A stretch of DNA of 64,000 bases, taken from positions 1,178,001 through 1,242,000 of the forward strand of contig OZ287700.1 in NCBI GenBank assembly GCA_965649825.1, given 5' to 3'. The stretch is from Penicillus capitatus. Its lineage: Eukaryota > Plantae > Chlorophyta. Within the stretch, counting starts at the first letter, position 1, and each line of letters starts with the position of its first letter. The notes beneath the pieces are model-generated. The model saw only the letters and a program-made list of their open reading frames with translations. It was not told where the DNA came from and made no database searches. Of this stretch, positions 1,765-64,000 are shown one piece after another. The position numbers and the translations under genes were made by a program.

Positions 1765-2213
1765 ATGGATGCCTTGAAACAAATCGTCGTCACGTTTTGT
1801 CAAGAGTATGATCGAACGCCGACGAAACTCAAAGTAATGGGCTCTTGCAACAACCAAAATCTCTCCTAAGAGGGGCACCTCTGTTTAGCTTATCGATGGC
1901 TTCATTCTCTACACTCTTGCAACAGCAAGCGTACAGGTAACAAACATCACAGCAAGGCTCAAATGTGTGACGGTGGTGTTGTTTGATGTGACCACAGTTT
2001 GCTTATATGCTTTTCGCGGGGTCCTTTCCTTTTAACGCGTTCCTCTCTGGATTGCTCTGCTGTTTGGGGATGTTCGTTTTTACGGTATGTCTTCGCATGC
2101 AAACCAATCCGGAGAATCGAGACGAGTTTGAGTTCTCGACGGAAAGAGCATTTGGAGATTATTGCTTTGCCTCACTGACACTGTTTCTCATCGCATGGAA
2201 TTTTATGGGATAG
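1765..2213 (+). CDS. DAD1: Oligosaccharyltransferase subunit DAD1/OST2 (introns 1834-1888, 1937-1997)
   Basis: Spliced product MDALKQ...RTPTKLKLIDGFILYTLATASVQFAYMLFAGSFPFNAFLSG...ERAFGDYCFASLTLFLIAWNFMG* has the DAD1 motifs GSFPFN and ERAFxD and the C-terminal NFxG. Confidence 0.96.
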
Positions 2214-2228
2214 AGAAAGTGACACTCC

Positions 2229-2233
2229 TGTAA
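2229..2233 (+). terminator. Chlorophyte-type poly(A) signal TGTAA downstream of DAD1
   Basis: TGTAA lies 15 nt after the DAD1 stop; UGUAA is the established chlorophyte polyadenylation signal. Confidence 0.6.
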
Positions 2234-2266
2234 CGAGAACCTTCTACGCCTATCACTGCCTGTGAA

Positions 2267-4721
2267 TCACGACTGAGATGCGACGGATTGTCGTTTGTTT
2301 GCACGATGCTGTTGCAGCCACTGCATGACTCTGTTAAATGTGTTCTTCGTTCGTTGGCTTTCTCTCTCCTGTCGGTGAAGCTGAAGCCATGCCGTGAAGA
2401 GACGGCGGATTCTTAGTTGATGGAGATGGTGTAAGGCCTTAAGCACCATCTGCGATTCATGTTCCTCTCGAAGAGCGATCTGCCGTTCGGAATAAGTACA
2501 GAGAGAGATGTGATTCTGATGACCTTGTCTTTTGCAGATGTCTTCCACAACAGAATGACTTGTTGAAGCTGTCGTGTCTTTCCGATTCTGTGTGCGATTT
2601 GACGACGATCATTTGCTTGTCTCAAGTACACGGCCCAGCACGACAGAAACTGATGTTTGAGGGAGATTTTTCGGTAACGTTCGGCAGATGCCACATCAAG
2701 CCACCTTTTGATCACGGGCAGCAAGAATCGCTTCTGTTAAAGAAGATATCGTGACGGAAGAAATCCAGGTGAGGAAGAGATTTACCGTGTTGTGTGCACG
2801 TGCTTTCTGATAGAGATCGATCTCTCTGACGATGCCTTTCCATTTGTATGGGAGCATGTGGAGTTTCCATTCCAATAATGCACTTTTCTGAAGGCGCCTT
2901 TTCCGAAACAGGATCCCTTTTTGATCCTGCGCCTCTCTGTCGTTGAGCACCGTCCGCCATTGTTTCCATTTTGATCTAATGAGGTCACCGGAAGCTTCTT
3001 CCAATGAGAAGCTGATGTGACCTTTGCAAGGATCGGTGATAGTGCATGACGGCCAAGTCACTTAATTTTGTGACGAGTTTTCTTTCGATGCTCAGAATAG
3101 AGCACGGAGTAATTGATGCTCTCTTGACCGAAGGAGACCATCGAGCAATGGAACCCGAGGTACTCGACGAAACTACATGAGGCGTTTTTGTTTTGGGAGA
3201 GACTGGATGTAATTCATCGCTCTTGGCATTTCTCCGAATCTCATTCGACAGATTCTGAGGTGAATTATTGGGGAGGCTCGAAGAGACAGCACGATCCGAA
3301 CAGACGTCCACATGGATGTCATTCGATGCCACACACTGTGAAAAAGGCTTCTCCATAGATGTCGCACATTTGGTTGATAGGATGCCAGATTTCGCAGTGG
3401 GAAAATGTTCGCTGGCATGACAAGAGGCATCGACACTGATTTTTTCTTCTTTGAAAATATCACTCCTTTGCGAGGTAACACCCTGTATGCCCTTTAAGTT
3501 ACTATGTCTAGGTCAGACGACAGGCAGTTGTACCTGCTGCAGTCGATGTGCGATTTTTTGATGCAGGAGTGATTTTCGAGCATCCAGTTTTCTGAATGCT
3601 GCTGTCGCCGAGGCAACATTCCTCCAATGAACGAGCGTCCACCGCAGCAGATAAAGCGTCCTATATCTCGCGGCAGTCGTTGCTTTCATCATCTCCTGTC
3701 ATGACACTCTAATCTGGCAACTGTTGGTTAATCGTCAGCAGCACACTTCTTGCATATGCATTTCATTTAATCTCTGTGTCTCCCTTTGCTGTTCGAGGGC
3801 TTTAATCCATGCTCGAAATGAACTCTGTAATAAGTACAGCGAACGAAATCGTTCTGCCGTTCTGTGATATCGCTCTTTCTTTTCTTGCTCTTTCAGTGAT
3901 TCGAAGGTTGTTTGCTGCTCGGATACGTTAATTGCCATGCTCCACCGATGGATTGCCATGCGCATGCTGTATTGTAAACGAATAAGGTCTTCTTTTTGCC
4001 AGTGAAAGTCGCAAACATGTGCTTACCGCGAATCGATGTCAAACCGTGAAGCAATGGCGTTTTGCTGTTCGCTCTCTGATCGAATCTTCCTCCAGACTTT
4101 GAAAACGTCCGAGATTCTGATGAAAGTGCAGTTTGGTACAGAGGGTCCCGGAACATCCAGTTCTGTGTTTTCGATTTGATCGATCGGTGCCTGATCGCTC
4201 TCGATCGACAAAGAGCTAGCAGAAAGAGCCTCTTCCGTCTGTGATCGAAACTCGGAATATCGATTCGTTGTTTCAAATCCGATAGTGTCTGTTTTCGATA
4301 CGTACAAAGCGCGATTCGATCGATAACGATCTAGGAGTTCATCGTCGATGCTATTTTCGATGTCGATACGTTCGATGAAAGACAAGTGCTCGTCGATCTC
4401 GCGACAAGCGTTTTCGTATTCGGCGGTACTCCAGATATCTTCGATCACTTTGTCCACTTTTCTATCGATGTCCGTCACAGACTCTACGTCGATAGCATGT
4501 GTCGATCGATTCGAAAGGACGGGATTCGAGAAAGTATCGTCTCTTATCCATCGATCCGAGAAGTACCAATCCGATTGACTTTCCGATTGACTTTCGGCGC
4601 GATTCCATGTTTCATCGTCAATTCGCAATTCTTTACGCCGTTGTTTATCGGTGAGTGATATCTCTGCGTTGACTCCGTCCATTAGATCGTCGATGCCGCG
4701 ACGATCGTCATATCTCGCCAT
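2267..4721 (-). CDS. Sfi1-like centrin-binding repeat protein (about 6 introns)
   Basis: Exons join in frame through GT-AG introns. Periodic Trp-containing helical repeats (RLFTAWLQ, FLSCWAVY, LLQSSFRAWIK, RSKWKQWR, SALLEWKL, TLVHWRN) are typical of Sfi1 repeats. The N-terminal exon is acidic and low-complexity; the start is uncertain. Confidence 0.7.
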
Positions 4722-5066: not shown

Positions 5067-7724
5067 TTATGCGCCATGTTCTTCATTCGTTCCTGTGATG
5101 ATATTCTCGAAACTGGCTCCTCCAGGAATCATAGGCAACACGTGTTCGATATGCGGTACCATCACATCCAATAGATACGGTCCAGGCGTATCTAACATCT
5201 TCCGAATGGCTCCTCTCAACTCCTTAGGATCGATCACTCTTGCTGCTGGTATGTTGAACGATTGCGACATCGTCACAAAATCCGGATAAATATCATCGAT
5301 AGAATGCGTATCGTGGAAAGCGGCATCCCTCTTGCCCAAGTAGGTATGACCGCGATTACTCTATGAAAAGACACAAGCCTTTGGTGCAACAACGAATGTC
5401 AACTAAGTACCTCATAGAATCTGTCTTCCCATTGCACCACCATTCCCAGGTGCTGATTGTTTAGGATGAGGACCTTGAGATTGAATTTTTCAATGTAAGC
5501 CACGGCCATCTCTTGAACATTCATCAAGAAGGAGCCATCTCCGTCGATGTCTACAACGACTTTGTTCTCGCGGCCATTCTTTCCATCGAAAGCGGCTGCT
5601 GCGCCCAGGGCAGAGGGCAATCCAAAACCCATGGCGCCCAATCCACCAGACGTCACCCACCGTCGAGGCTTAGTAAACCCGTAATGCTGAGCAGCCCACA
5701 TCTGATGCTGACCCACACCCGTCGTGATAATAGCATCTCCATTTGTCTCTTCATAGAGCATCTAACAGAGCACATCTATCGCACACATTCGCTTACTGAC
5801 GCCTCACTTGGATCGCCATCTGCGGCAAAATAACACCCTCTTCTTCAGGGAATGTGAGAGGGAATTGCTTCTTCTGCTCTTTCAGTTCCTCTCTCCAGCT
5901 TTGGAACTGCTGTGCACTGATCGATTGATCTTTAATCATAGAATTAAGCATTTGCAATGCGGGCTTAGCGTCTGCACACACTGGAATGTGTGCATGCTTG
6001 TTTTTGTGAATCTCTGCTGGATCCACATCTATGTGAACAATCCTTGCATGCGCTGCAAAGCTCTCCAGTTTCCCCGTCACACGATCATCAAACCGTACAC
6101 CCACAGCCAATAGAAGATCTGAATGGTGGACGGAATAGTTCGCATAGACAGTCCCATGCATGCCCAGCATCTTAAGCGAAAGATCATCTTGGAGTGGATA
6201 AACACCCAGTCCCATCAAAGTCTGGGCAACAGGAATGCCAGTCAACGACACCAGCTCACGTAGCTCTTCATATGCATTCAAGCATCCTCCTCCACAATAG
6301 ATCACCTGTGGCATTCCTGTATCGATTGCAGATTTGTAAAAGACATGTTACCGGTTTCTTAGATTGCTGAATGGCCTTGAGGATTTTCTTGATAGATCCT
6401 GGACGTGGCGGCTGCGGCAAACGGCTCATGTATCCTAACACACTACCATCACTCATAGAATTGGTCAAAGCTTATAACCACGCCTGAGATACGCATGCTG
6501 CTGAGCCAGTCTGGAACAGCCATGGATTGCTGGATATCTTTCGGCACATCGATGAGTACGGGTCCTGGTCTTCCTGTCACATCAATATCTCATCTTTATT
6601 TCCTCGGCAACGTCCCCTCTTACCTGTGCTTGCTATGTAGAACGCTTCTTTAACGATTCTGGGAATATCATTGACATCCTTGACCAGGTAATTATGCTTT
6701 GTGATTTGACGGGAGACCTCGACAATCGGTGTCTCCTGAAACGCATCTGACCCAATGAAGCGTCTGGGTACCTTTGTTGCATACATCGCATGAGAATGGC
6801 CTTTTGGCAGGACCTCCTCACCTGTCCAGTAATGGCTACGATGGGCACACTGTCCAATAGCGCATCAGCCAATCCCGTTACCAAATTTGTGGCACCTGAA
6901 CAGCAATCCACATCTCCTGCCACTCTCCACAGACAAGACCTGGTCCAGAAGTGGCAATACAGACACCGACTCTTCCAGTAACCTTTGCATAGCCTTCAGC
7001 TGCAAAGATCTCTCCCTGAGACACACCCATTCCCGCACACATTCCAATGTGGAGCATGGATCGATGTGACAGACCTGTTCGTGACGGCACAGGACGTTAC
7101 GAATGCCATTGCTGCGTGTCAGAGCTTGATGAATCTCCATCGAGGCCCCTCCGGGGTAAGCAAAAACGGTGTCGACTCCTATTTCCTCGCTCTCAATATC
7201 ATCGATCTATTTTGAGCGACAGGGACCTTCTCTTTCCAAACTCTGTATGAGGATGTCGCATCCTTTCCGTTCTTTGTCTCCATAGCGATCGACCCATTCC
7301 TTAGCATCCTCGCCGTGCAGTGCAGCCTGGGCTGCCTCTTTGGCACGTTGCAACTATTTGTGCAGCACAGGGTCATGGGCAAACATTCGATTCATTAAGA
7401 TTTCCACCTCCGCTTTCATCGCTCCCTTTTTCTCCTCCGTTAGTTTAGCACGGACAGCGATCGCTCCATTGTTTCTTCTCCAGCGACCCCTTCACAGCAA
7501 CGGGCGATCGAGGAGACATGAGATTCGTTGCTTACGAAGCGGAGCGTGTCAGTTTCGGCCGGCGACCCAAGAACCGACAATAGCGCTACACAGGATTGGC
7601 CGTATTCCAGTCGATGTTGAGGCACAAAGGCATCTCGCTTGTTCGTTCGTGTACATACCTTTGATGTCAGTCCTCTATTCGGAGCCGTGGCAATCGGCAT
7701 TGCGATCGAGGATGGACCACCCAT
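5067..7724 (-). CDS. ALS: Acetolactate synthase large subunit, plastid-targeted (12 introns, one GC-AG)
   Basis: Motifs [67 protein letters not shown] (TPP-binding), [10 protein letters not shown] and HVLPMIPGG; Arg/Ser-rich transit peptide. Confidence 0.97.
6435..6483 (-). other. GC-AG intron in ALS (TCAG|GCGTGG...GTGTTAG|GA)
   Basis: Only this junction restores [14 protein letters not shown]; the nearby GT donor is in the wrong phase and produces a stop. Confidence 0.85.
6574..6584 (-). repeat. Intron-terminal motif TGATGTGACAG (ALS intron 3' end)
   Basis: The identical 11-mer ends introns at 11545-11555 (-), 26236-26246 (+), 31567-31577 (+) and 37238-37248 (-). Confidence 0.9.
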
Positions 7725-10156: not shown

Positions 10157-12403
10157 CTAGAATCGCGTCGATGATATTTCCTCCGATGCCTTATTGAGAA
10201 GCTTGAGTCTTTGAAGGCACTGGGCACGACGCCGTGTGACATCTGGATCTTCATGCAACAAACGAGAGAGCTCCTCTTCGTCTTTTGATGCGACCTCTTC
10301 TTGCAAGGAATCCAATATATTATCTTTGGCCTTCATCACCTGCACATAATATTCTTTGACTGAACCTGTCATTTCATATTATGCGCGTTTTGGACTTGAG
10401 AATGGACAATGGCTTTCGGGATGGTGTTGAGGAGCTGACGCCGAACGAAGTTAAGATAGGCCGACACCTGTGAAGCTATTTTCTTCAAATAGACGGCGCC
10501 TGTCACACCATCTGTATTCTCAGAATCGATATCCCTCCCCGAAAGCGTCCTGAATTCTCTCAAAGCGATCCTCGCTTCTTGACTGGTGCCTGAACGGCCC
10601 TGAAGTTCGATGATGTGACGGAAGATGTTCGCCGAGAAGTAAGAGGCCTCCATTTCTACCAGCGTCTTCACAATGTCACGCGAGTCATTCTTCAATGACT
10701 CCAGTCTTGTCACGGCGGCGTTTGTGATCTCTGTGCTCAACGTGCCATACTTTGACAGCATTCTGCAGAGCTCTGTCTTCATCGCGAGTTCAATGGTCTC
10801 GAGCAGAATGCGATGAACCTCTTCCACGGCTGACTGTGCTGGATCTTTCATAAGCTTCAGGCCAGCTTCCAGCAAACGACGATAACCCATTTCAGGTGCA
10901 ATTAAATGTGGACGAATGCCATCGGCTTGGCTAACGATACGGCGGACGTTGTCGATGTTGAGTACCTGCTCGAACGGTAACTGATGCAGCTCGCCATGAA
11001 GCTTCTGTTCGAAGACTTCGAGGATGCGCTCGCCGCCGCCCTTACCACGATCGATCATCTCTGTGTAAGATGTCTCAAACTCACGGCAGCGCTTCAGAAT
11101 GAAGTGAACCATCTTGCCACGAGAATCCATAACAGAGCTGCCCAACACGGCCAACTCCTTCTCGATATTCAGGATACTGCAGAACACACAGGGAACCGTA
11201 GGTCAGCACAGAGCGAGGGCGTTAGGGATACGGACTCTTGCTTAATGGATGTCTGCAGGCCAGGCAGGGCCCGTCGAACTTCATGCAGTAGTCGATCGCT
11301 GAGTTTTTGTGACAGAAAGGCGGTTCCCACATTTGGCAAATCTGAATAGTCGGCAGAGCTTTTGAAAAATTCTTCTTCCCTTGCTCGGGCGGACTGCATG
11401 TTCATCTTGGAGTTGATGTCTTTCTGCCCTCGGTTCACGACACCCACCCATCCGTTCCTCAATCTCAGCTGCTTCGACTGCAGGATGTCACGGACACTCG
11501 TTCCTGGGTCCATAATGTCGATCTTGGTGAGCACACCGATTGTCCTGTCACATCACTGAGATAGGCAGAGATCATTAAAGATCGGATCGCAGCAGCACCG
11601 TTCTCCGTTTGGATCAACGTCCCTCGCCATGCGCAGGGCATCAGAGGTGGCCAAATCTGCATTGGCAGGTGAGACGGCAAGGATGATGGCGTTTTCTCCC
11701 TTGATGTAATGACGGACCATATCGTCGATTTCTTTGACGATGGATCTTGGTTGACCATCGATGGGGACTTTCGTCAATCCTGTTCCATACATGACAAATG
11801 ATCATTTATAATCGCATGTTTCGCAGGGACATCAGCTGCTTACCTGGCATATCTACAAGCGTCAGATGCGGAACGTGAGGAGAAGTGACAGTTAAGAAAA
11901 TCGGCTCGGGCGATACAGCTTTGTGTGATAGATTTCCCAAATGCCGAACAGTTTCATCTTCGATTTCCTGGCGAATTTGATCTGCACACGATCACCAGAC
12001 CTCACTCTATCGTACGGTCACACTTTTCACCCTCTTACCGAAATCTGTGTAGCGGCGGCCCTTGGCATGCATAAATTCGCCAGCCTCATCTGCGTCTGGA
12101 TCGTCCAGGTGAATCAGGTTGAGGACGAGTGGTCGACGCGTCACGATTCCTGTCCCTCGTGGCAGAAAATCGCGTCCCACGACAGCCTCCAATACAGAAC
12201 TCTTTCCGGAACTCTAGACACAAATGTGTGACGCATCGTCGAGAGAAAGAGTGAGGAATGTCTCTCACTTGGCCACCAATGACGACGATGCTTGGCAAAC
12301 GGTCCCATAGACTGGGAAACGATGAGTTCTGTCCTCCAATGCCATCGCCGAGAACGGCAGCAGCGTTTTGCAAACGCGTGACGAGGGAGATAACATTATC
12401 CAT
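10157..12403 (-). CDS. DRP1: Dynamin-related protein, DRP1/phragmoplastin-type (6 introns)
   Basis: GTPase motifs [30 protein letters not shown] and TKID; middle domain; C-terminal GED ([15 protein letters not shown]); no PH or PRD domain. Confidence 0.93.
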
Positions 12404-12524: not shown

Positions 12525-14223
12525 ATGCGACGGACGGGATGGAGGCGTTTCTTGGAAGCTACGACAGCACGGAAGACGGGGAGACAGAAACAACAACGGG
12601 TGCCGTTCTCACCCATACAACGTGCTCTTTCTCAACATCCATCCGTAAGAAGGCAGTCGACGCACTACTATCTCGTCAAAAAGAGTGAGACAGGTCTTGG
12701 TCGAAGAATCGGGATTCCTCGGCGTTCTCACACTTAACAGGTCCAATTCCATTCTCGGGATGACGTGTGATGACATCTTCTGCTCGGCAGGCCTCAGAAA
12801 CTCAACGCATTGAATCTTGACATGGTGGGATGTGAGTGTATGTGTTGAGGACCTCGGCAGGTCCGTGTTCAGGTAACGCGAATGGGACAGAAGATCAAAG
12901 AATGGGCGCATCGGGATCATCCAATCCGGACCATTCTGATCAAGGGAAACGGCAGAGTGCGTTACGCTGTCTTATCTCTCTGCAGCAAAGCTCTCAGGCG
13001 TTTTGCAGCGGAGGGGATGTGAAACACATCACTCAGCGCAGTTCTGTCGGCGACATCGAGACAGGTCGCGCCTTCTTCAGAAAGAATTACTGGCTGGATT
13101 ACACCATATCGCAGCTCGAGAAGCCGTGTGTGGTGCTGATGGATGGAATCACTCATGGAGGTGGGTGCGGCATCGCCATGCATGCATCGCACCGTATCTG
13201 CACCGAAAAGTGAGGCCCGAAATTATAACGATGTAAGAATGAGCATCGTCTCAGTACCGTATGGGCGATGCCCGAGACCAGAATTGGTTACTTTCCGGAT
13301 TGCGGATCTTCTTTCGTTTTCCGCAGAAGCGATCGAGTGGGTCAGAAATGGGGATTGCTCTATGCCCTGACGGGAGAGGCCGTACCATCGCCCGTAATGA
13401 AACTATGACGACACTCTCTGATCTCGTCTGACCTGTACTCGCTGTAGGACATGGTGCCCTACGGAATAGCAACACACAGAATTCGATCGGAAGAGTGGTC
13501 AGCGATCGAGACCAAACTCAAAGAGCACCCCGTCGATATTTCCACCCTCTTGCACAGCCACGCATGCCCTCCAGTAAAACAGCAGTAGACGGAGGAGATG
13601 TCGATCTTGGGTGTCGTGTGCTTAGCAAGTCGAGCACAAGGAGGCACCTCTGAGAAGATGGGTCATCGATGCATTGACGACCCATGGGTACCAAGAGGCT
13701 GGAAGTGTGATCGACATGATCGAGCATCTCAAATCCTTATCATCTGCCAAATCTTCGTCCCTGTCCTTTGTGGAGAATCAGGAGAACATAAACGGGGATT
13801 CCATGAATAGCTTTCTGCTCAGAGATTTCACAAAACGCATCTTGGAAAGCATCGAGCGGTAAGAACACGTGCGGAATCAAACAAACAACGTATGGGCCAA
13901 TTCCAGGGCCTCTCCCCTTTCGTTGAGCATCACTTTTGAGTTACTGAAAAGAGTGAGAGATTCGGAAAGCCTCGAGCAATGCATGCAGAGGGAATGGATA
14001 CTGTCAGACAGTTTCCTTCGTCTGCCGAGCGATTTCATTGCCGGTGTCCAGGCGCAGCTGATCGATAAGGGCACACCCAAATGGAGATTCCCGTCCCTCG
14101 AACAGGTAACGCTTCTCGCTTGCTCATGACTCCATCCGTCTCGTTCAGGTGGATACGCGACTGGTGCAAGAGTTCTTTCGTGGCAGAGATGGTGTTGATC
14201 TTGATGTGACGTCTGTCTTGTAA
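12525..14223 (+). CDS. HIBCH: 3-hydroxyisobutyryl-CoA hydrolase-like protein, mitochondrial (9 introns)
   Basis: Spliced LTLNRPQKLNALNLDM, KGNGRAFCSGGDVK, MDGITHGGGCG, WAMPETRIGYFPD, ASPLSLSIT and DFIAGVQAQLIDKG; Arg-rich N-terminal presequence. Confidence 0.92.
14219..14223 (+). terminator. TGTAA poly(A) signal overlapping the HIBCH stop codon (TTG TAA)
   Basis: Sequence ...GTC TTG TAA; the signal includes the stop codon. Confidence 0.5.
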
Positions 14224-16685: not shown

Positions 16686-17406
16686 TCAGGACAGTTGTCC
16701 ACAGTCGGCGATGACGATCTTCTTCGAGGTGTTCCCCCCTCTGCTGCCGTACGCTTCGACGGACTTGACGGTATCCATCCCATCAACCACTTTTCCAAAA
16801 ACGACATGCTTTCCATCTAACCACGACGTCTTGACCGTCGTGATGAAAAATTGAGACCCATTTGTGTTCGGTCCGGCATTGGCCATCGAGAGATATCCTG
16901 GGAGATATTCGAATATGATGTGACAGCTGTGATGCTCTCACCTGGTTCTTCGTGCTTAAGGGAGAAGTTCTCGTCGCTGAATTTCTCGCCGTAGATAGAT
17001 TCGCCTCCCGTGCCGTTGCCTCTTGTGAAATCTCCGCCCTGAACCATTCTATTGATGTGACGTCTCGATGGCGGCGCGGTTCACTTGGCACATGAAGTCT
17101 GGAATCACGCGATGAAACGTAGATCCCTTATAGTGCAATGGCTTTCCACTTCTTCCCTGGCCTTTCTCCCCTGCCAGCACCACAAACGAACGTACAAACA
17201 CCTCGACGATCTATGCCGTGACGCACCGGTGCAGAGAGCACGGAAATTTTCGGCCGTCCGCGGGACGATATCTGCAAAGAGCTGCGCCGCAAGCACCGAT
17301 CGCAACAGGAATGCGGCTGCAACGGCGGCATTACTTGCATGGTAATGCGACCGACGGGCTGCCCATCGGCTTCGATGTCAAAGAAGACCGTCGGTCGGGA
17401 AGCCAT
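16686..17406 (-). CDS. Cytosolic cyclophilin A-type peptidyl-prolyl isomerase (4 introns)
   Basis: [11 protein letters not shown]...[17 protein letters not shown]...[16 protein letters not shown]...SIYGEKF...[31 protein letters not shown]. Confidence 0.97.
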
Positions 17407-17615: not shown

Positions 17616-20511
17616 TCAGGTCGACAAGCTCTTGGTCATGATCTCTTTGGTGTTGGTGGAGAGACCAGGCGTGTCCACAATCTTCTGAATCTCCTTCTTC
17701 ATCAATTCCTGTCGTTCAGGATTGTATTTCTTCCATTCTGTCAATACTGTACTGATGCGCGCCGCCACTTGAGGGTTGAGTTTATCCAGCTCGATGAGCT
17801 TGGTCGAATAGAGGGAGTATCCAGATCCATCTGCTGCGTGAAAATTGACAGGACTCATCGCAAATCCACGGAAGAGTGCATAGTTGTTGTTGGGATTGTC
17901 GATGCGGTATGCCGGATGCTCAAACAATGCCTTGACAGCATCGGTGTTGCCCTCGATGTTAGACATAGCCTGGAGGGTAATCCATTTGTTCACCACCAGA
18001 AATTCTTCCTTCCATTTCTCATAGAACTCGTTCAGCATATCGGTACGCTGCTGACAGTCGATGTCGATCACGGCCCGGACAGCCGCAATCGCATCTGTCA
18101 TGTTGTTTGCCTTGCGATAACGTTCCAGGCATTCATTCAAGTACTCTTCCTTCCCAGTCATGGCCAAACCGATCAAAGAGATGTTCTTCATGGCACGTTT
18201 AGACATCTGGCCAGGACTGATGTCAAAGACTTCGCCTGCGGGAGGATCTGTCGTAAGAGATCTGTGTGCATGGGAGGGAGGTACCTTCAGCGGCGTCGTT
18301 CTTCTGGAGGACATTGCGGAAGGTGTCTTCCAGATTCTTCGCCAGTTCGACCCCCACATGCTCGATCACTCGGTACAGCAGTACTGGATCCACTTCGTGG
18401 AGCTCGCCGGTCATCTCGTTCTGGCTTGGAGGTGTCAGTGCCAGAGCGCCAAACTGTCCATCGATAACCTCATCTTCCAAAACGGATTTGTAGGCATCGA
18501 TCAGGTTCTGAGGGACGTTGCCCAGCGGCGCATCGGCGCCATTTGCCAGGGCTTCGGTATAGAGCTTCTTAATAATCTTTTTCGACAGACGTTGACCTGC
18601 ATCCCACCTGAAAGGCACACCGCATCCAAAACGTCACATCATTGTGTCAGCAAGACACCCACCTGTTGAACTCGTCACTATCGTTTGCGAAAAGGAAAAC
18701 CAGATCTTCATCCGTTTGTCCTTCGATCTCCAGCTTCACAGGGGCCGAAAAAGAACGGAGAATGGAAGGGACTGGATTGGAGGACACGTCTTCAAAGACA
18801 TACGTCGCTTCCGCCGTATCAAATTCCAGAACAATCTCAGGGACCGGCTTCGCCGAAGCGCCTTTCAATTTGAGCGGCATTTCTTTGCCATCCGGTCCCA
18901 AGAGCGCCATTTTGAGAGGAATCAGCACAGGGATCTTCTCCGTCTGTCCAGCTGTCGCGGGCGTCGACTGCGTCGCATGCAATGTGTACGTCCGATTGGT
19001 TTCGTTGTAGCTCGTCGTGATCTTGACGTTTGGCGTTCCTGCCTGACCATACCACTTGTGCAAATTGGACAGATCTTTGCCGTTCGCTTTCGACATCGCC
19101 GAGAGGAAGTCATCGCATGTCACGGCCTTGCCATCGAAGAGGCTAAAGTACAGATCCATGCCCTTGCGGAATCCATCGTCGCCCAAGAGCGTTCGATAGA
19201 TGTTGATCACTTCTGCACCCTAGACGCACATCTCACTCCAAATCGCGCCGCATAAGATTGGGGATAGATCCCCGTCTAACCTTTTCGTAGACGGTTGTGG
19301 TGTAGAAGTTGTCCATCTTGATATAGGACTCGGGACGAATCGGATGCGACATGGGACCAGAGTCTTCGCTGAACTGCACGGAACGCAAGGTGCGAACATT
19401 GCCGATGCGTTCGACGGCGCGCGAATTGAGATCAGAAGAAAACTCCTGCATCACACATAGCGATGGTTAGCGGTTGTGCCGATCTGTTAGGTCGTTCGTT
19501 TACCTGATCTCTCCATACAGTCAGTCCTTCTTTGAGCGTCAGCTGAAACCAGTCGCGACACGTGACGCGATTTCCCGTCCAGTTGTGAAAGTACTCGTGT
19601 CCCACGACTGCCTGAATGTTGGAAAAGTCCATGTCCGTTGCCGTCTCGGCCGATGCCAGGACATATTTCGAATTGAAAACGTTCAGCGACTTGTTCTCCA
19701 TCGCTCCCATGTTGAAATCATCCACGACCACAATATTGAACAGATTCAAATCGTACTCGCGTCCAAAACGCTCTTCATCCCATTGCATAGCCTCTTTTAA
19801 CGATTTCATGGCATGGCCAACTTTATGGGTATTATGCTTCTGTGCATAGATACGCAGGGTCACCTCTTTGCCGCTCATGGTCTTAAAGGTATCTTCCTGA
19901 TGACCCAGATCGCCGGCCACCAAGGCAAAGAGATAACACGGTTTGAGAAAAGGATCGACCCATCGAGCATAATGACGACCGTTTTCCAGATCTCCCGTTT
20001 CCTCGAGGTTGCCATTCGATAACAGAACTGGATACTTTTCTTTGTCCGCCTCAATACGGACATCGTAACTTGACATGACGTCTGGACGATCGAGCGCATA
20101 CGTAATACCTCGGAATCCTTCCGCCTCACACTGTGTGCAGTAATTCCCACTCGACTTGTACAGTCCTTCCAACAACGTGTTCTCTTGCGGTTTGATTTCG
20201 GTCACCACTTCCAAAACGAAGTCACCGACGGGGACGTTGCTCAGCGTCAAGCTGTTTTCCGTCAACGTTTGGTTTTCGGGGGCAACTGGAGTGTTGTCGA
20301 TTTTGATGGATACGAGTTTCATGTCTTTGCGTCCGTTGAGAAAAACGACGCCGCTGCGATCGTCGGATTCAGAGTTAAGTGTGTATTGTGAGGTCGCCAC
20401 GACGGTCGTCACATCTTCGTTGAGATTGAAGCTCAGCGAGATGCTGCGGATAAGATAGGGGGTCGGTTTGTAGTCCGTGCGGTGGATCTCTTTGAGCTTT
20501 TCGCCCTCCAT
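17616..20511 (-). CDS. M1 aminopeptidase N (PepN/puromycin-sensitive type); possible extra transit-peptide exons upstream to about 20800
   Basis: [51 protein letters not shown] and the C-terminal [11 protein letters not shown]. Confidence 0.95.
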
Positions 20512-20977
20512 TGCCTTCAAAACGCAAAAGCTGAACAAAAATGCAGAGGGATGAAACGCACAGTGGAAGTGGTCGTGGCGGAGGCGCTGAAAACAACGAA
20601 CGGTCGGATCGAACCTTCTACACACAGCTGTCACATCATATGGGAAATGAGGCTGGCCGGACCAGCGAAGGGGCAAGGCCGAATGTAGGTCTCACGCGAT
20701 GGGATGTGCCACGGCCGACGCAGACGGATGGCTCTTGAAGACGCTAAGGACACACAGCAGATGATCAGTGCCGATAAGAAGCGACAGCCAAACGGCAGGG
20801 TCGGTGGAGGAGAGGCACGAAGCGCTGGAAAGAAGGAAAGAAGGATCGCAACGAAGCCATGTCGAGCTGAAAAGTGTCTCCGTCGACAACGGGCCCAGGG
20901 CGTCAGGCTGGACGAAAACGGTGGACGTGTGCGTCGATGATGTGTCTGTCTGGTGTCGTACTGTTGTTGGTGCATCC

Positions 20978-22908
20978 ATGGAGGTCTACGGCGCTCGATG
21001 TCTGAATATCAATGTGGGAGTGATGGGCCACGTGGACAGTGGCAAGACGAGCTTAGGTCCTCTGTCTGGTATCCCCACTCTGTGAACGCTGTCTCTCTTT
21101 TCAGTTGAGAAGCTCTCGACGGTTCTCTCAACGGCAGCACTGGACAAGCACCCACAGAGTCAGGAACGTGGGATCACACTGGACCTCGGCTTCTCTGCCT
21201 TGCGTGTGCGAAAGGGCGATAGGGAAAGGCAGAAAAGAGTGTGCGAGTGTTGCAGGTGCCTATTCCGGAGAGACTCGCGGGGGAGGGCAGCACGTATGAA
21301 TCGCTGCAGTTCACGTTGGTGGACTGTCCTGGACACGCATCGCTGATCCGGGCGGTTTTGGGAGGCGCACACATTATGGACATGATGATCCTGGTGATCG
21401 ACGTGACGAAAGGCATCCAGGTGCAGACGGCCGAATGTCTGGTGGTCGGAGAAATTTCAGTCGACAAGATTCTGGTCCTGTTGAACAAAGTGGATCTCTA
21501 TCCTCCGGAAAAGCGTGAGAAATTTGTGAGTAAAGCGAAAAAAAGAGTGATGCAGACACTCAAACTCACCTCCTTTAAGAATCCCAGAATCCTCCCCGTC
21601 TCAGCAAAAGAAGGTGTGCAGCATCCGAAAGGGTGGATGATAGGAGTGATGCTTTCATAGGCGAGGGGATCAATGAGATCATCCACGAGCTCACACAAAT
21701 GGTCGATGGCCTGCCCAGTCGACGCACTGGGCCTTTCCTCTTCGCCATCGATCACTGTTTCCGCATCAAGGGACAAGGAACTGTTCTGACAGGCACCGTT
21801 TTACAGGTCTTGTTCGGGCAGAGATCTGATCCGACACATTGGATCTCACTCAGTGAGAATGCTGTAGGGAAGTGTGACCATACATGATCTCATTGAATTG
21901 CCAGTCCTGAAGGAGTCGAGAAAGGTCAAGAGTATTCAGGTGTTTCATCAAGCTGTCACATCAGCTTCTGCTGGAGATCGAGCCGGCATCTGTGTTGCTC
22001 GGTTGGATCCATCCCGCATCGAACGTGGACTGGCTGCAACTCCCGACAGCATCCAGTCCTTCCAAGTCAGCCGTCCCGTCCTTAACGCACACTTGCTCAA
22101 GGGATTTGTTCAGATGGCCATCGCTTCGGTGGAGAAAGTGCGATTCTATGCGGACCAAGTGCTTTCTGGGCAGAAACTGCATGTCATGTTGGGACATGCC
22201 ATCGCCATTGGCAAGTTCACTTTTTTCACATCATCCACCAAGCCATCTCGTTCGTACTGCATTGGAAGAGTGTATTCGGAAGGCGTTGGTCATGTCTTGT
22301 GGCAGGGTTTGCTTTGGGCGATGAAGAGTATCAGTTCGTAGAGGAGCTTCTTCCAGACGTCACCACTACTCAATGGGCTCTCATTCAGTTCGAGGTGCCA
22401 ATGACATCGCCCGTGGAGCTTTCGTTGATTGCTGCCCGGCTCGGCGGAGAATCCGATGCTCAGCACTGCAGAATGGCATTGCATGGGAAGATTCTGCAGA
22501 CCATCGATCCTGCACAACGCGAACAACTCAAGATCTACAAGGCATCCTTTGCCTGCCACAATTCAGACCGCAGGATCTGTGTGCTGACAGCTGAAGCGAC
22601 GACACGGGATGATAAAGGCCGTTATGGATGATGGGAAGACGGCGATCTGCAGCGGCATGTTCAAGAAGGAGACAGATTTCAGTTTCTTCATCGGCCTGCC
22701 CGTATCCTGCAGCGCTTTTCTGTTGTCTCTCTCTTCTCACCATCAGAATTGTGCAAAGGTCGTTTCGGAGAGAGGCGATCGAGGGAAACTTTTACGGCCA
22801 CACGGAGGCGAGGGCGATTTCCTTGTGCTTTTTCAGAAACCTCTATTGCAGAGAACCGAGGAATACACAAACATTACACTCTTCTCCCGAAAACACATCC
22901 ATCCTTGA
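20978..22908 (+). CDS. EEFSEC: Selenocysteine-specific elongation factor eEFSec (7 introns, one GC-AG)
   Basis: INVGVMGHVDSGKTSL, LDKHPQSQERGITLDLGFS, VDCPGHASLIRAVLGGAHI, AIDHCFRIKGQGTVLTGT and GMFKKETD. Confidence 0.93.
22542..22590 (+). other. GC-AG intron in EEFSEC (TACAAG|GCATCC...GCTGACAG|CTG)
   Basis: Removing these 49 nt joins LKIYK to LKRRHGMIK, matching the eEFSec LKxYKLK pattern; the unspliced form frameshifts to a stop. Confidence 0.85.
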
Positions 22909-23034: not shown

Positions 23035-25865
<2,831 letters not shown>

Positions 25866-25957
25866 GGCCAACGTGTCGACCGGGAAATCGGAAACGCAAA
25901 CGTCACATCAAAGTCGATCACCCATCGCACGTCATTTTGGACTTCGGGTTGTGAAAA

Positions 25958-26295
25958 ATGCCACCGCTGAAGTCGATTCGATTGAAGGAAGTGGTCTACA
26001 CGCTCAGTCCCTTTGAGCAGTCGGTCATGTCAGGGCTGTGGAAACACGGGCCGACGAACTTCCTCCACACTGTCAAAGAAGTGAGGCTATCGCTAGACAC
26101 ACGTGTATATCGGCGAGGGTCCTTCTCGAATGGTTCCGCTGTAGAAAGGCTTGAAGATCAGCGTCTTTGGCCTGTTTCCTTTCTTCGGAACCGTCTGGTG
26201 CGATCCCACTCTCGGCCCTTGCGATCGAGGCGATGTGATGTGACAGGTATGCCCAGAACTACAAGGAAAAGGAGAAACTGGCCAAACGTTACTGA
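25958..26295 (+). CDS. QCR8: Cytochrome bc1 complex subunit 8 (2 introns)
   Basis: MPPLKSIRLKEVVYTLSPFEQSVMSGLWK...VWYAQNYKEKEKLAKRY* has the plant/algal QCR8 motif VVYxLSPFxQ. Confidence 0.9.
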
Positions 26296-56659: not shown

Positions 56660-56875
56660 CTATTTCCTTCTTCCTGTTAGCTTTTCAATGCGTTCCTGTG
56701 TAAACCATTCCCCTTTCCCTTCCATCCGCCAGCGAATCGAGTTCCTTACCTGTCGTGCCTGCTCTTCTGCCTCTTTCTCTGCCGTGCGTTTCTGAACGCC
56801 GAGGAAGAATCGCACCCAGTACACGATCGGAGGCAGGGCGGCGATGAAACAAACAAGAGCAACAGAAAGATTCAT
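56660..56875 (-). CDS. Small single-pass membrane protein of about 53 aa (one intron)
   Basis: MNLSVALVCFIAALPPIVYWVRFFLGVQKRTAEKEAEEQARQ joined via a GTAAGG...ACAG intron to ERIEKLTGRRK*. No family recognised. Confidence 0.55.
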   Translation of the reverse strand: MNLSVALVCFIAALPPIVYWVRFFLGVQKRTAEKEAEEQARQVRNSIRWRMEGKGEWFTQERIEKLTGRRK

Positions 56876-57212
56876 CTGGCACACTGAATACTGTCTGGAT
56901 GTTAGGTAACCACAGGACGAGGCACCTGAGGTTCGAACGTCTGAACAGAAGAAATTTCAGCGACGTGTACAAAACGGAGTGCGCTCACAAATCCATCTAG
57001 GATCACTCAAGGTCAGAGTGCTCTGTGCGTCTGATACCTGAATGACCTTCAAGGGCTGCAGTAACGTGTGGCAGGTGCCGTTTGAGTGTCGCCTTTGGCG
57101 ATGTTTTCAGGTGAAGAGGAACAGGAAGCCTGACTCTCGTGTAAAGCTGACGTCCTCCAAATGCCGTCCCTTGACATGCGATCATCTCAACCGATTCCTT
57201 CAACTGGCAGCG

Positions 57213-58748: not shown

Positions 58749-58757
58749 CGACGACGG

Positions 58758-59715: not shown

Positions 59716-59787
59716 GCTCTCGAAACGATGTGACGTCCGGCACTCCAGTTTACGATAACGCGTAGAGTCGACAGATTTGGGCGACGC

Positions 59788-60807
59788 ATGTCGGCAAAAG
59801 ATAAGATCCAAGAGCACATTCGGGATGACCTCGTTCCCAAAACCCGCGATTTCATCAACGTACAGCACTCAGAACAGGCACGCACCAGCACCACGAATTT
59901 GTGCAGAACGCAAGCGCGCTACTCGATGCGCAAGTAAAGTTGGCGGACGTCTTCGTCGAGTGGAACCGACCAGACTTGGTACACGCTCACCACGCACTCA
60001 CTGTCCGTCCCAGATCACAAACGGGTGCACGTAGGCATCGCAGCTCAAAGCAGAAATTGAAGAAACACTACATCTGCGTCGCAATCTGCACTTGCATCTG
60101 CAAGCGATGGAGACAGTCGGCGAAGGATACCTATACGACCCTTCCACCACGACGGACTTTGAGCAGAAGATCTCGGAGCGCGTCTCTCAGCTTCAGAGCC
60201 GAAGGTACCCGCCTCCACCGCGACAGCATCGCATCACTGAGCGTCTTTGTTCGTGTGCAGATTCGATTACCAGGAGGCAGATGAGTACCAGACTTATCAG
60301 CAGTGCATTTCCAGGCACGCAGCTCAGGAAACAGATGCTGGGCCGTCCGAGCGCCATGAAGACGATGATGAGGTGCAGCTGGCACAGGAAGGTGATACGG
60401 GTGCGCCCAATACGAAATGTCCCGTCTGCGGAAAGCTCGTCTGTCACATCAGCAATCGGTTTCCAAAGAACATGGACTGTGTGCTGAGTAGTTGGAGGAT
60501 TTGGCACATCCTGTGATGGATAGTGTTGGATTCGTTTACGAACGGGCAGCGATTCACAAGTACATTGCCGATTTCTGGGCCGATCGCAATCCGGAGTTCA
60601 TGGAGCTCGAACTGGGCACCGTCAAGTGCCCTGTGGCAGGTGACTGCGCTGTCGTGCACGAGCATGGATGTGTAAAACGGCGCGTGTGTAGGGACCAATC
60701 ATATCGTAAAGGTGGACGAATTGACACCCTGTTTCGGCGTCGTTCGGAATCTCAAGCGCAAGAGACGTCAAGCCGGGCCTGTTACAAGAGAAGACGTCAT
60801 TGGCTGA
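59788..60807 (+). CDS. NSE2: NSE2/MMS21-like SUMO E3 ligase of the SMC5/6 complex (5 introns)
   Basis: Helical N-terminus; YLYDPSTTTDF; acidic EDDDEVQL linker; KCPVCGK..LAHPV..YERAAIHKYI..KCPVAG resembles the plant MMS21 SP-RING. Confidence 0.8.
60439..60451 (+). repeat. Intron-initial mirror motif GT-CTGTCACATCA (NSE2 intron 5' end)
   Basis: Exact reverse complement of TGATGTGACAG. A near-identical start occurs in the ALS intron at 7063-7074 (-), and GTCACATCA is itself the donor in Sfi1 (3013-3021). Confidence 0.85.
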
Positions 60808-60829
60808 ATCCCGTACGACCGATCGATTA

Positions 60830-62071
60830 ATGCACCGCACAGCTTTCTGCCTCATGCGACTCTGCGCCTTGCATGGTGGTGGACGCTATACGAGTCCTCT
60901 GACGTCGACACGTCTCTCTGCGCTACGCGTCGCGCGCTTCTCGTCATCGCCTCGACAACGCTGGCCGATCACCCACACGTCACACGCATCACGATTATCG
61001 ACCACCTCGGTACGTCACGTTATCGGTCTGTGTCCCACAGGCATCCGAGTGGTGGTTAAGGTGCGAATGGAAGCTCAGGCAGCGGAAAAGTTGCCGGCAA
61101 ATCTCAAGAAGATTGTTGGTGCCTTTCAGATGGTTGGCTCTTCTAGCCTTTCTGCTGTTTGGTCACTGAACATGCGTTTCTTGAGGTTCCGGATCCAATG
61201 GCGCGTTACAAACAGTTGCTGTTCTTTGCTTCGAAATTGGATCCTCTGCCTGTCGAAGATCAGACAGAAGAGAATCGCGTCCACGGTTGTGTTTCGCAAG
61301 TGAGATGCTCCGCCGTTGAGATAACGCAGATGACGTGCCTTTTCGAAGGTCTGGGTCACAGCGCAGTTGCTGCAGGGCGTCATGCATTTTAAGGCAGACT
61401 CGGATTCGCAGCTGACGAAGGTCTGTGTGAAAAGAGTTAGATGCTGAGCATCGATGATGTGACGTGTAGGGATTGGCAGCGCTACTGGTCCAAGGACTGA
61501 GCGGATGTTCGCCGCAAGAGATTCTGCAAGTGCAGCCAGATTTTATTGAAATGTTGGGACTGAAGCAGAGCTTGACCCCATCAAGAAACAACGGTTTCCT
61601 CAATATGTTCCGCATGATGCAGAGACGCACACTTGAACTCGCATCTCGCGATCTTCAAGATCCGACGGTCACACATGTCACACATCCCTCAACGACACCT
61701 TCGGCATTGCTGCTCCATAGGTATCTGATGGGACGGGTGATGGGACAGATGGCTCCGGAAGTGGCACATCTGATCCTACAGATACGAGGCCAGTGGAAGC
61801 AGCTATACGACGCAAGCTGACGGCGGAATTGGATCCAGAACAGCTGATCATCACCAACGAATCCGATAAACACGCAGGGCACATGGGAAACCCGAATGGC
61901 GATCCCGAAACGCATTTCCATCTGCGCATAATCTCTTCAAACTTTGACGGAATGAACGCCGTTCAGCGGCACCGACGCGTCTACCAAATCTTACAGGAGG
62001 AGTTGGCAGGACCCGTTCACGCCTGTGCCCTGGAAACAAAAACGCCAGAAGAAGTCAAGAGCACCGCCTAG
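60830..62071 (+). CDS. SUFE1: Plastid SUFE1 (SufE domain plus C-terminal BolA domain)
   Basis: [26 protein letters not shown] (catalytic Cys), [15 protein letters not shown] and [12 protein letters not shown]; BolA motifs SDKHAGH, ETHFHL, RHRRVY and VHACAL. Confidence 0.94.
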
Positions 62072-62372
62072 ATCGCATGCGATGCCACCGTTTATGTACG
62101 CCATCGACCCGTGCGGCATTCTATGATGTTTACACATTGGACCAAGAGTGAAATCTTGTTCTCTTCGCAAACACATATGTATCAGGCGATGTACAGACAG
62201 CATCCTTTTTCTCATGCGTTTCTCAGCTTTGTCACCAAGGCACCAAACACAGCTGCATTCATCTGGGGTCGCAAAGTACAGGAACAGAGCATCTGTTTGT
62301 GTGGTCATTGCCACCGTGGAATCTCTCCTTGTGTCAAAACAGGTCGCGCCCCAGGCCAAAACTGTCAAATCA

Positions 62373-63373
62373 TCATTTCAACGAACGCTTGATGATCATA
62401 ACGACGATCAACAAAATGGATCCGGCCAGAACAATAGGGGCTGCTCGACCACCCGGCCCCATGTTGACGAAAAGACGCCCGCCCAATGGCAACAGGCCCA
62501 CGAGGGCATCGTCCAGTGCACCACTAGCGTCGGAGACAATCCGTGATGTCTTCTTCACTAGGTTCCATAACCAGGTCAGGGCTGTCCTCACCATACGTCC
62601 GATAGCCGTCGCCACCTTCCGCAAACCTCTCAGGAGCTCGCCAAAAAAGCGGCCAATGTCATCGAGCATTGTCTCCAGAGGACTGGAACGACGACGTCCA
62701 CGGCGAGCCTGACACCCCACAAGCACACTTTTCAAAAGCCACGTCCGTTCTGACTTACCGCTGCTTCATCGTATGGAATGAGAGACGCAGTCCAGTCGTT
62801 AACCAACTCAATGCGTGTCTAAGACACAAGCTGTCACATCAGTCACCCATCAAAAGGAATGACATTAGAGAGCTCTTCGATCATGCTACGGAGTTCTGGA
62901 TCATCTTGAATCGCCGCCAATGCTGCCGATTGCACACCAGAGTGATTCACCTAAACAGCGCACAGCAGTTCTATCTCCTGTACAGGCCACGCTTCAGATG
63001 CGTTACCATTCGTTCACTGGCGCGCATGATGCGTGAGAAGTACGTGCTGGATCGCGTATGAGAGTTGGCAGCATCGATCACGCTGTCCGCCTGGGCTCCT
63101 CCACTTCCCTTGTTCTCATCACTGTCAACGCCAATCACTCGACAGGTATGTAAGAAAATTTTCGTACTCCGAACAAAGCCCGACGATTTCTTCAACGGCT
63201 TCGTTGACCTCTGCCCTTCCGAAGTGAACTTCGTTATCATTCAACGAAACTTCCAGCCATGCGTCCTCCTCGAGCTGCTCATACTTAAGACCCGGTTTCG
63301 TGGGAGTGCGTGTACCGTACTTGAGGTCGCTCGCTCGTGGCGGAGTTCGTGGCTTGTGTCTACGACGACGCAT
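62373..63373 (-). CDS. Hypothetical protein with amphipathic helix and C-terminal transmembrane tail (4 introns)
   Basis: Four GT-AG introns join in frame: MRRRRHK...EEIVGLCSDDENK...SAALAAIQDDPELRSMIEELSNTRIELVNDW...LDDIGRFFGELLRGLRKV...APIVLAGSILLIVVMIIKRSLK*. Confidence 0.7.
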
Positions 63374-64000
63374 ACATGTCTATCTGTTTTTTGTTCGATG
63401 CGTGTCTCACTCGAATGACTGGACGTACTGGACGGGCGTCCGCATGGGAAACGCGTCCCAACTGACTCGACGCCGCACCGGCCGCCGCACCTGTTCCGAG
63501 TCTCAATGCCACTGAACGCAACATGATTTACAAATGCTAAGGGCGACAGACACGTACATCGTCGTCGCTATCAGCTGATACGACGCGGCGTCATATAACG
63601 TGATGCGACGTCTCGGTGTATAGAATATCCATAGCGATGTGACAATCATATGCATGTGACGATGGTGTTTGCTCGTGAAACATCCATCGTACGTCACATC
63701 ACACTCTCCTGAACACCGTGGCTGGCAAACGTCACATCACTACATACTCTCATACGCCTCATCTTTGTTGTAGTTCTTTGCATAGACTGGAGGATCGATC
63801 GGTGGCGCACTGGGTGCAGGCTGTGCCAGATAGAGCGTCGTTGGATCATTCGGATCAACCAATCTACACAGAGGGAGAGCCTTGCTGTTGCATCTCCGTG
63901 AGATCCCGAGGCCTACGCTGTAGCGACGAGTTTTGAAGGTGGTTGGTTATGTGCATGAGATCTTTGGCTTTGCGATGTCGCTCCCGCTTGTGCCGTTCTT

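Follow-up and report, generated by a model that had tools for sequence, protein, structure and literature searches.

A nine-base word near the 3′ ends of a minority of introns in a siphonous green alga is most likely a new variant splicing signal and not an Introner relic

What does a letter-perfect nine-base word do in the introns of unrelated genes? The word TGATGTGAC recurs throughout a 64-kb stretch of algal DNA (the window, which here means the whole stretch analysed; its contig, of 1.17 Mb, is in European Nucleotide Archive (ENA) assembly ERZ25074695). An original prediction, made from the letters alone, took the word for a strand-symmetric intronic motif and offered three origins for it: a relic of the terminal inverted repeats (TIRs) of an Introner transposon, a protein-binding site in the DNA, or a lineage-specific fusion of branch point and acceptor. 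Our analysis suggests that TGATGTGAC is most likely a new variant 3′ intron splicing signal, carried by a minority of introns, and not an Introner relic. The largest exon in the window is that of RPB2, and to judge from its identity to the closest named relatives (80% to Caulerpa lentillifera, 71% to Bryopsis and 70% to Ostreobium) the window belongs to a siphonous green alga of the order Bryopsidales.

Overall, the window holds 25 exact copies of TGATGTGAC, 9 on the + strand and 16 on the − strand. All 24 positions listed in the original prediction were correct, and one copy, at 25902 (−), had been missed. The enrichment holds against a dinucleotide-shuffled background, where 1.13 ± 0.98 copies are expected and none of 100 shuffles reached 25. 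Under a second-order Markov model (25 observed vs 0.88 expected) the word is the most over-represented 9-mer in the window; a maximal-order Markov test masks the signal because sub-words of the motif are enriched as well. Enrichment, at about 25-fold, is confined to the exact word: one-mismatch variants occur at 31 sites vs about 25 expected, which is chance level, and among the 23 of these sites that could be aligned to a close relative, 11 were unchanged and one was an exact copy there. With neither enrichment nor preferential conservation among the one-mismatch variants, each of the nine bases counts. The two bases that follow the word are AG in 10 of the 25 copies and GT in 9. A full-text literature search with the raw word returned primer matches only, and to our knowledge the word differs from every known splice consensus.

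For the comparisons below, the close relative (the sister lineage) is a second ENA assembly, ERZ26696514, which is syntenic with the window at a local nucleotide identity of 82-93%. Its locus L003 corresponds to about 1-20 kb of the window and its locus L001 to about 18-41.5 kb; L006 is a copy of L001 at 99.4% identity. The possibility that the relative is a homeolog was ruled out, the two sequences being in different assemblies. Further off is L002 (Logan SRR33785045), a more distant relative with 84% identity in RPB2 and synteny that runs from RPB2 to the RCC1-like gene, and the RPB2 loci of Bryopsis (L004) and Ostreobium (L005) served as outgroups. Gene strands were assigned from codon-bias maps, Pfam matches on exon segments, local tblastn (for cyclophilin) and the exon blocks shared with L002. 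An intron is called verified when its flanking exons are supported by frame, Pfam or homology. Brute-force GT..AG pairing of open frames was biased to long false introns, and a motif-blind automatic intron caller, many of whose 66 calls were mis-bounded, served as a guide only.

Relative to the host genes, the word is oriented and placed in a biased way. Strand symmetry did not hold up as proposed: 19 copies are sense and 6 antisense (p = 0.015), although antisense copies within introns are still far above chance. TGATGTG is the top sense-biased 7-mer in genic non-coding DNA (20 v 4), the full 9-mer standing at 16 v 1. Gene domains contain every one of the 25 copies, and none is in the roughly 13 kb of other DNA. 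Sense copies in exons are disfavoured because the word has TGA in two frames. The earlier estimate of about 18 intronic copies is roughly right: 11 sense and 3 antisense copies lie in verified introns, and four more (14202, 27568, 63693 and 63731) are probably intronic too, and sense; 10611 and 21955 are exonic and 3013 is ambiguous. The 11 verified sense copies (1984, 6576, 11547, 18633, 24204, 24225, 26236, 31567, 37240, 37876 and 61455) lie 2-31 nucleotides (nt) upstream of the acceptor, even in the 170-nt QCR8 intron and the 303-nt intron of a gene with RRM and Surp domains, and their mean relative distance from the intron 3′ end is 0.15 vs 0.5 for a uniform distribution (p~3e-5). For four genes (RPB2, ALS, dynamin and QCR8), only the AG right after the motif will serve as acceptor if frame and conserved protein are to be kept, so that four of the five introns said to end in TGATGTGACAG do so. 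The fifth, proA intron A, does not: frame and L002 homology put its acceptor 10 nt beyond the AG adjoining the motif, and both AGs are kept in the relative. The 5′ ends of the motif-bearing introns are ordinary, variable GT sites (GTAAGA, GTGCTG, GTGGGT, GTCGGA and GTGCGC among them).

The word is also better conserved than its surroundings. The conservation test covers the window copies alignable to L003 or L001, with 41783 and 60443-63731 outside it. Seventeen of these 19 copies are 9/9 in the relative and 169 of their 171 positions are identical, vs 1141/1353 (84%) in the ±35-nt flanks (binomial p~1e-10 for motif vs flank). Two further copies just left of the window are intact as well, which makes 19 of 21. 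The two copies that are not intact are 21955, exonic and antisense with a synonymous change, and 27568, where a variant adjacent to the acceptor is conserved instead. The retention of 10611 is uninformative because its exon is 94% conserved. In the introns with copies 1984, 18633 and 24204, the spacer between motif and acceptor mutates or changes length while the motif and the acceptor AG stay, and the dinucleotide past the word is not conserved (GT became AT at 14202 and AG became GG at 16916). Because both the spacer and the following dinucleotide vary, the selected unit is the 9-mer. Two extended classes, 'GACGT' and 'GACAGCTG', which hinted at a bZIP/TALE palindrome, were ruled out, their extensions being unconserved between the two lineages. 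Purifying selection, to judge from this comparison, holds all nine bases. Turnover was seen in both directions: the RCC1-like intron in the window ends in TGACGTGACAG at 40201-40209 (−), containing TGACGTGAC with one mismatch, and L001 has the exact word there (22267) and ends in TGATGTGACAG; in the opposite case L003 is exact at 14443 and the window's genome reads TGACGTGTG.

How old is the word, and how old are the introns that carry it? In the relative, L003 contains 12 copies and L001 contains 10, a density like that of the window. On the other hand, no copy was found in L002 (16.6 kb), Bryopsis (24.7 kb) or Ostreobium (27.4 kb); the top enriched word of L002 is TTTAGG. Four introns (the one in RPB2, the two in proA and the RCC1-like one) have counterparts at identical positions in L002, which end in CTGTTAATAG (RPB2), ATGCTTTTTAG and GGAAATTTAG (proA) and TTGTTTCGCTAG (RCC1-like), with a T-rich tract in place of the window's motif. 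Since these four positions are shared with the motif-free L002, the introns appear to be older than the motif, or else the motif was lost in L002. The RPB2 intron position is absent from the RPB2 genes of Bryopsis and Ostreobium. As judged by tblastn exon blocks, RPB2 has one intron in the window (27959-31985), in L001 and in L002, at least four in Bryopsis (L004 10001-14723) and at least seven in Ostreobium (L005 10001-17405), which implies heavy intron loss plus a clade-specific intron.

The sense and 3′-end bias, the use of the adjoining AG, the flexible spacer between a conserved motif and a conserved AG, and the restriction to transcribed regions all argue for an element that acts in RNA. 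On balance, with somewhat better than even confidence, we take UGAUGUGAC to be a cis-acting pre-mRNA element for the definition of the branch site and/or the 3′ splice site. The data show a sharply defined, conserved and lineage-restricted word that is over-represented, biased to the sense strand and to intron 3′ ends, and present in introns at ancestral positions; that its reader acts on RNA, with branch-site or acceptor choice as the outcome, we infer. In the proposed mechanism, about 15-20% of spliceosomal introns would have UGAUGUGAC among their final ~30 nt, where a highly sequence-specific trans-factor would read it and so define the branch site and/or the 3′ splice site. The word contains two UnAy units, UGAU and UGAC. 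By the geometry of the spliceosome, a branch adenosine cannot be as near to the AG as 3 nt, which is where the second A lies when the motif abuts the acceptor; in those introns the branch would have to form at the first A, at a distance of 8 nt, or further upstream, and where the acceptor is further off either A of the motif could be used. Inspection by eye found no canonical CTRAY branch site in short introns such as proA-A (45 nt) or that of RPB2 (49 nt), and the motif provides the best-placed UnAy units there. The word would have originated once this lineage and that of L002 had parted, when introns already present had their T-rich 3′ ends converted into it, and would have been under purifying selection on all nine bases from then on.

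Several findings weigh against a splicing element of this kind. About 80% of introns do without the word: the PFK-proA-RCC1 block has it in about 3 of its 17 introns, the others ending in ordinary YAG contexts, and an 18.6-kb multi-intron stretch holds no copy. The AG next to the motif is skipped in proA intron A and used in four other introns. Three antisense copies (16916, 17053 and 60443) lie in verified introns, vs about 0.06 expected; they show no positional preference, and both cyclophilin copies among them are retained in the relative. Copy 25902, in a conserved block of a divergent promoter region, has its nearest downstream AG at 72 nt. Only UGAU and UGAC resemble a branch site; in a manual comparison with U2 GUAGUA the remaining positions of the motif showed no pairing, so that branch-site pairing would not account for the strictness of the word over its full length. 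Such strictness suggests that the reader is either an RNA, by base pairing, or a protein of modular build. No pairing of the motif with the 5′ end of its own intron was found by eye, and an Rfam search of the window and five related loci (178 kb) returned no small nuclear RNA (snRNA), U2 or other RNA gene. A bolder form of the same idea, which we consider quite unlikely, is that these introns form a young third spliceosomal class: the nine bases would be recognised by a modular RNA-binding protein or a dedicated small RNA (e.g. a diverged U2-like snRNA with GUCACAUCA-type complementarity), which would have taken over branch-site/acceptor recognition in about a fifth of the pre-existing U2-type introns in the time between two siphonous-alga genera, the antisense copies serving spliced antisense or read-through transcripts.

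Because a sense RNA signal leaves the three antisense intronic copies unexplained, a reader at the DNA level stays a live rival, if a rather unlikely one. Here the double-stranded 9-mer would be bound, in either orientation and within transcribed regions, by a sequence-specific DNA-binding protein, such as a TALE-class homeodomain dimer, or would act as an element of the 'intron-mediated enhancement' type, with its AG sometimes co-opted as an acceptor. The antisense intronic copies, about 50-fold above chance and seemingly retained, speak for this part of the original prediction, as do copies 20630 and 25902, which stand upstream of first coding exons in 90-94% conserved blocks, and the spacing of about one copy per gene, many within ~650 nt of the start codon. 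TGAT-G-TGAC(AG) also bears some resemblance to the PBX-MEIS site TGATTGACAG and the plant BEL5-POTH1 site TTGACTTGAC. Nevertheless, DNA binding gives no reason for the 19:6 sense bias or the bias to the intron 3′ end, and the ~13 kb outside gene domains, where promoters are, hold no copy. The AG, GT and CAGCTG extensions that suggest a homeodomain site are unconserved between the two lineages, and unenriched one-mismatch variants are atypical for transcription-factor sites. Neither the orientation-independent occurrence in promoters or intergenic DNA nor the degenerate consensus of a TALE-like site is seen. The word might instead be an RNA element with a regulatory rather than constitutive role, which we think unlikely: UGAUGUGAC would bind a lineage-specific RNA-binding protein or small RNA and tune acceptor use (intron retention, alternative AG) in a mainly housekeeping regulon, without being a branch site. 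Such a role would agree with the presence of the word in a subset of introns and its absence from whole multi-intron genes, and the all-or-none sharpness suits a reader that base-pairs or is modular. Two AGs are conserved in proA, one adjoining the motif and the other, 10 nt on, the true acceptor, which would allow alternative out-of-frame splicing, and a gene with the Pfam domains of splicing factors (RRM and Surp) has three copies. However, in four genes the motif-adjacent AG is the sole acceptor that fits the conserved protein, and regulation explains the antisense copies no better than constitutive splicing does.

The origin that the prediction had listed first, a relic of Introner TIRs, is now highly improbable. 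It would make the introns decayed insertions of an Introner or a miniature inverted-repeat transposable element whose inverted ends, CTGTCACATCA...TGATGTGACAG, gave the splice sites. Both orientations do occur, and the reverse complement starts with GT, so that an element with inverted repeats could bring both splice sites; there is one inverted pair, 25902 and 26236, 334 nt apart; and neither Bryopsis nor Ostreobium has an RPB2 intron at this position. Yet the pair spans the QCR8 start codon and is not within one intron, and no intron has GTCACATCA at its 5′ end plus TGATGTGAC at its 3′ end, the 5′ ends being unrelated. A self-blastn of the 64-kb window gave no non-self high-scoring segment pair, hence no dispersed repeats, and the flanks of the 25 copies agree at 15.4 of 60 positions on average, as random sequence would. 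Four motif-bearing introns (RPB2, proA-A, proA-B and RCC1-like) occupy positions common to the motif-free L002, which goes against an Introner origin on the ancestral-position test that the prediction itself had named, and the copies are kept by selection and are not decaying. The absence of shared flanks and repeats, the ancestral intron positions and the selected copies contradict the Introner explanation. Two other candidates were ruled out: a C/D-box small nucleolar RNA (UGAUGA-like), the introns being 35-60 nt long and without partner boxes, and U12-type introns, there being no RTATCCTT 5′ site and no TCCTTAAC branch site.

The individual copies are listed in the table. Three of them (20630, 25902 and 41783) lie 5′ of the first recognised coding exon and could be in introns of the 5′ untranslated region (5′UTR) or in promoters. 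Copy 21955 is probably a chance copy, because it is only 8/9 in the relative through a synonymous change.

Table. Copies of the nine-base word in the window, and positions of a second repeated word
Feature	Coordinates	Strand	Orientation and position	Supporting evidence and state in the close relative
DAD1 intron copy	1984..1992	+	sense, 5 nt before acceptor (..GACCACAG up to the junction)	following exon 1992-2210 matches Pfam DAD positions 37-109; intact, spacer CACAG changed to TGCAG
Ambiguous copy	3013..3021	+	antisense to open − strand reading frames without Pfam match	9/9, flank 58/70
ALS intron copy	6576..6584	-	sense, adjoins acceptor, 50-nt intron	frame ..AFYIAST, then next exon; "_enzyme_M" domain downstream; intact
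Dynamin coding-exon copy	10611..10619	+	antisense; cGT CAC ATC Atc = RHII	exon 10372-11175 (−) with Dynamin_M match, 94% conserved
Dynamin intron copy	11547..11555	-	sense, adjoins acceptor, 54-nt intron	frame ..GE R up to the junction; intact
Copy before exon like ribosomal S6	14202..14210	+	sense, 17 nt before acceptor; probably intronic	downstream exon 14224-14454 matches Ribosomal_S6 positions 2-53; intact
Cyclophilin intron 4 copy (44 nt)	16916..16924	+	antisense	tblastn exon map; intact, 4-nt indel adjoining
Cyclophilin intron 3 copy (46 nt)	17053..17061	+	antisense	tblastn exon map; intact, neighbouring bases changed
M1-aminopeptidase intron copy (55 nt)	18633..18641	-	sense, 25 nt before acceptor	flanking exons DUF3458 and DUF3458_C; intact, 3-nt deletion in spacer
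Copy 5′ of first M1-aminopeptidase coding exon	20630..20638	-	sense, then AG; possibly in a 68-nt 5′UTR intron starting GTGAGA	intact within highly conserved block (66/70); CAGCTG after word changed to CAGCTC
SelB/eEFSec coding-exon copy	21955..21963	-	antisense; gCT GTC ACA TCA = AVTS	exon frame, L001 annotation; 8/9
RRM+Surp gene intron copy (303 nt)	24204..24212	-	sense, 10 nt before acceptor	intact although 4 nt are gone from spacer
RRM+Surp gene, same 303-nt intron, second copy	24225..24233	-	sense, 31 nt before acceptor	intact
Copy in RRM+Surp / QCR8 divergent region	25902..25910	-	sense to RRM+Surp gene, 5′ of first recognised coding exon	intact within conserved block (63/70)
QCR8 intron copy (170 nt)	26236..26244	+	sense, adjoins acceptor	exon 1 matches Cyt_b-c1_8 positions 5-42; exon 2 reads (W)YAQNYKEKEKLA; intact
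CDC50 intron copy	27568..27576	-	sense, 28 nt before acceptor; probably intronic	8/9; variant TGATGTGTGACAG adjoining the acceptor is kept
RPB2 sole-intron copy (49 nt)	31567..31575	+	sense, adjoins acceptor	frame ..GKPLQ up to the junction; intact in L001; same intron position in L002 without motif
proA intron A copy (45 nt)	37240..37248	-	sense; acceptor 10 nt past the motif's own AG	intact; orthologous L002 intron without motif
proA intron B copy (59 nt)	37876..37884	-	sense, 18 nt before acceptor	intact; orthologous L002 intron without motif
Copy ~390 nt upstream of RCC1-like start codon	41783..41791	-	sense; 5′UTR intron or promoter	
NSE2/SP-RING-like gene intron copy (53 nt)	60443..60451	-	antisense, intron positions 5-13	frame shift required between open reading frames 60241-60513 and 60492-60827; weak zf-Nse match (positions 31-55) in downstream exon
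SufE-BolA gene intron copy	61455..61463	+	sense, 6 or 16 nt before acceptor	downstream exon matches SufE positions 69-120
Copy in non-coding DNA of unnamed − strand gene	62833..62841	-	sense, then AG	variant TGATGGGTGAC precedes; no Pfam match
Probable-intron copy, second of two	63693..63701	-	sense	intron starts GTATGT at 63747
Probable-intron copy, same intron as 63693	63731..63739	-	sense, 8 nt past probable donor GTATGT	
AAAGAGTGA(G)	12246, 12680, 13948, 15092, 21542, 24454, 25770, 27063, 38887, 42047, 42943, 56410			

Along the window, copies and variants are unevenly spread. Four one-mismatch variants of the 9-mer stand within 800 nt at 368-1129, all on the − strand in low-GC DNA without clear open reading frames, and none of them is an exact copy in the relative. 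The RRM+Surp gene (23080-25950, − strand), whose domains are as in splicing factors, has three exact copies, two of them in tandem in its 303-nt intron. The 18.6 kb from 41800 to 60400 have none; this stretch holds multi-intron genes (45.6-52.1 kb and 57-58.8 kb) and, at 52-57 kb, low-GC DNA (0.44) without convincing open reading frames.

In the + strand segment 16436-16720, near the antisense copies in cyclophilin, the stop codon of a kinesin-like gene lies within a donor-like TTTAA/GTAAGA whose GT is kept in the relative. An acceptor of the TCTTTTCAG type, itself conserved, and a well-conserved stretch follow this stop and converge on the cyclophilin 3′ end. By this pattern, + strand kinesin-like transcripts probably extend toward cyclophilin, so that convergent transcripts would overlap, and such transcripts might use the + strand copies within the cyclophilin introns.

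Two other repeated words were noticed. The first, AAAGAGTGA(G), has 12 copies vs 0.7 expected, mostly upstream of genes or intergenic, and is unrelated to the 9-mer. It is enriched in the relative too, where 7 of 9 alignable copies are intact (77/81 positions vs 80% in the flanks), and it may be an element of promoters or close to transcription start sites. The second is a 15-mer, GGCATAGATCGTCGA, with three exact copies vs 0.01 expected, at 17203-17217 (−), 24040-24054 (−) and 49344-49358 (+). All three are sense to their genes (cyclophilin, the RRM+Surp gene and one at 49 kb), each inside an intron or at its end; in the relative, L001 has one copy and L003 none.

What would a splicing role mean? 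A letter-perfect 9-mer marks a minority of introns in an apparently intron-rich alga, and it seems to have arisen recently at old intron positions, where T-rich tracts had stood. Should it prove to be a splicing signal, one could follow in it, as a natural experiment, how a new code for intron recognition comes about and is taken up by introns that already exist. One would then also predict that a trans-factor (SF1, U2AF or an snRNA) has changed to match, which a comparison of the two lineages could reveal. Unless the word is modelled, gene predictors that were trained on other green algae would place acceptors wrongly in this genome.

How does the word compare with known systems? With TALE composite sites, such as those of PBX-MEIS and BEL5-POTH1, it shares two tandem TGAY cores, and some copies continue as TGACAG; unlike them, it has one extra base between the cores, an unconserved AG, no intergenic copy, and a bias in strand and position. 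U12-type introns are likewise a minority class with a sharply conserved 3′ element near the acceptor, which is read by base pairing. Unlike in U12-type introns, RTATCCTT and TCCTTAAC are both absent from the motif-bearing introns. Like Introners (Huff et al. 2016; Gozashti et al. 2022), the word is a lineage-specific sequence common to many introns of an alga. However, Introner families are similar along the intron to near both boundaries, often have TIRs and target-site duplications, and occupy new positions (PMC9860276), whereas the introns studied here have no more than 9 nt in common and occupy ancestral positions.

The word also has likenesses to branch-point words. Like a U2-type branch point, 11 copies are sense and shortly upstream of the acceptor, with three antisense exceptions. 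As with strict branch-point words, TGATGTGAC is near-invariant, sense and in the 3′ part of the intron, tolerates hardly any variants and contains a UnAy unit. Strict branch-point words pair with U2 GUAGUA; by our own manual check, the UGAUG part of TGATGTGAC does not pair with canonical U2, and the word lacks CTRAY. Strict words (UACUAAC in S. cerevisiae; consensus WCTRAYN) occur in 66-100% of introns in intron-poor genomes (Irimia and Roy 2008, PMC2483917), and essentially no intermediates are seen between the strong branch-point regime, with strict words in nearly all of few introns, and the weak one, with degenerate signals in many (PMC2483917). By contrast, TGATGTGAC is in about 15-20% of the introns of an apparently intron-rich genome, an unusual frequency that falls between the 'strong' and 'weak' regimes (PMC2483917), and it misfits WCTRAYN.

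As for a lineage-specific fusion of branch point and acceptor, the prediction is supported in part: the word is lineage-specific, sense-biased and near the 3′ splice site, but its distance to the acceptor varies, about 15-20% of introns have it, and it is not the general acceptor signal. The model for such a fusion is the Trichomonas motif ACTAACACAYAG, together with a related motif in Giardia (PMC13548475, PMC6679479). In Trichomonas the motif stands at a fixed distance, abutting the AG, in nearly all of few introns with a strict 5′ site, GTAYGT. Here, unlike there, the distance is 2-31 nt, 5′ sites are variable and ordinary, and most introns lack the word; four verified introns abut the acceptor and the others have the word 5-31 nt away. 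Those four run the word straight into the acceptor as TGATGTGACAG, like the Trichomonas motif, and a branch at the first A would lie 8 nt from the AG, near the 7-nt spacing of the Trichomonas-type ACTAACACACAG.

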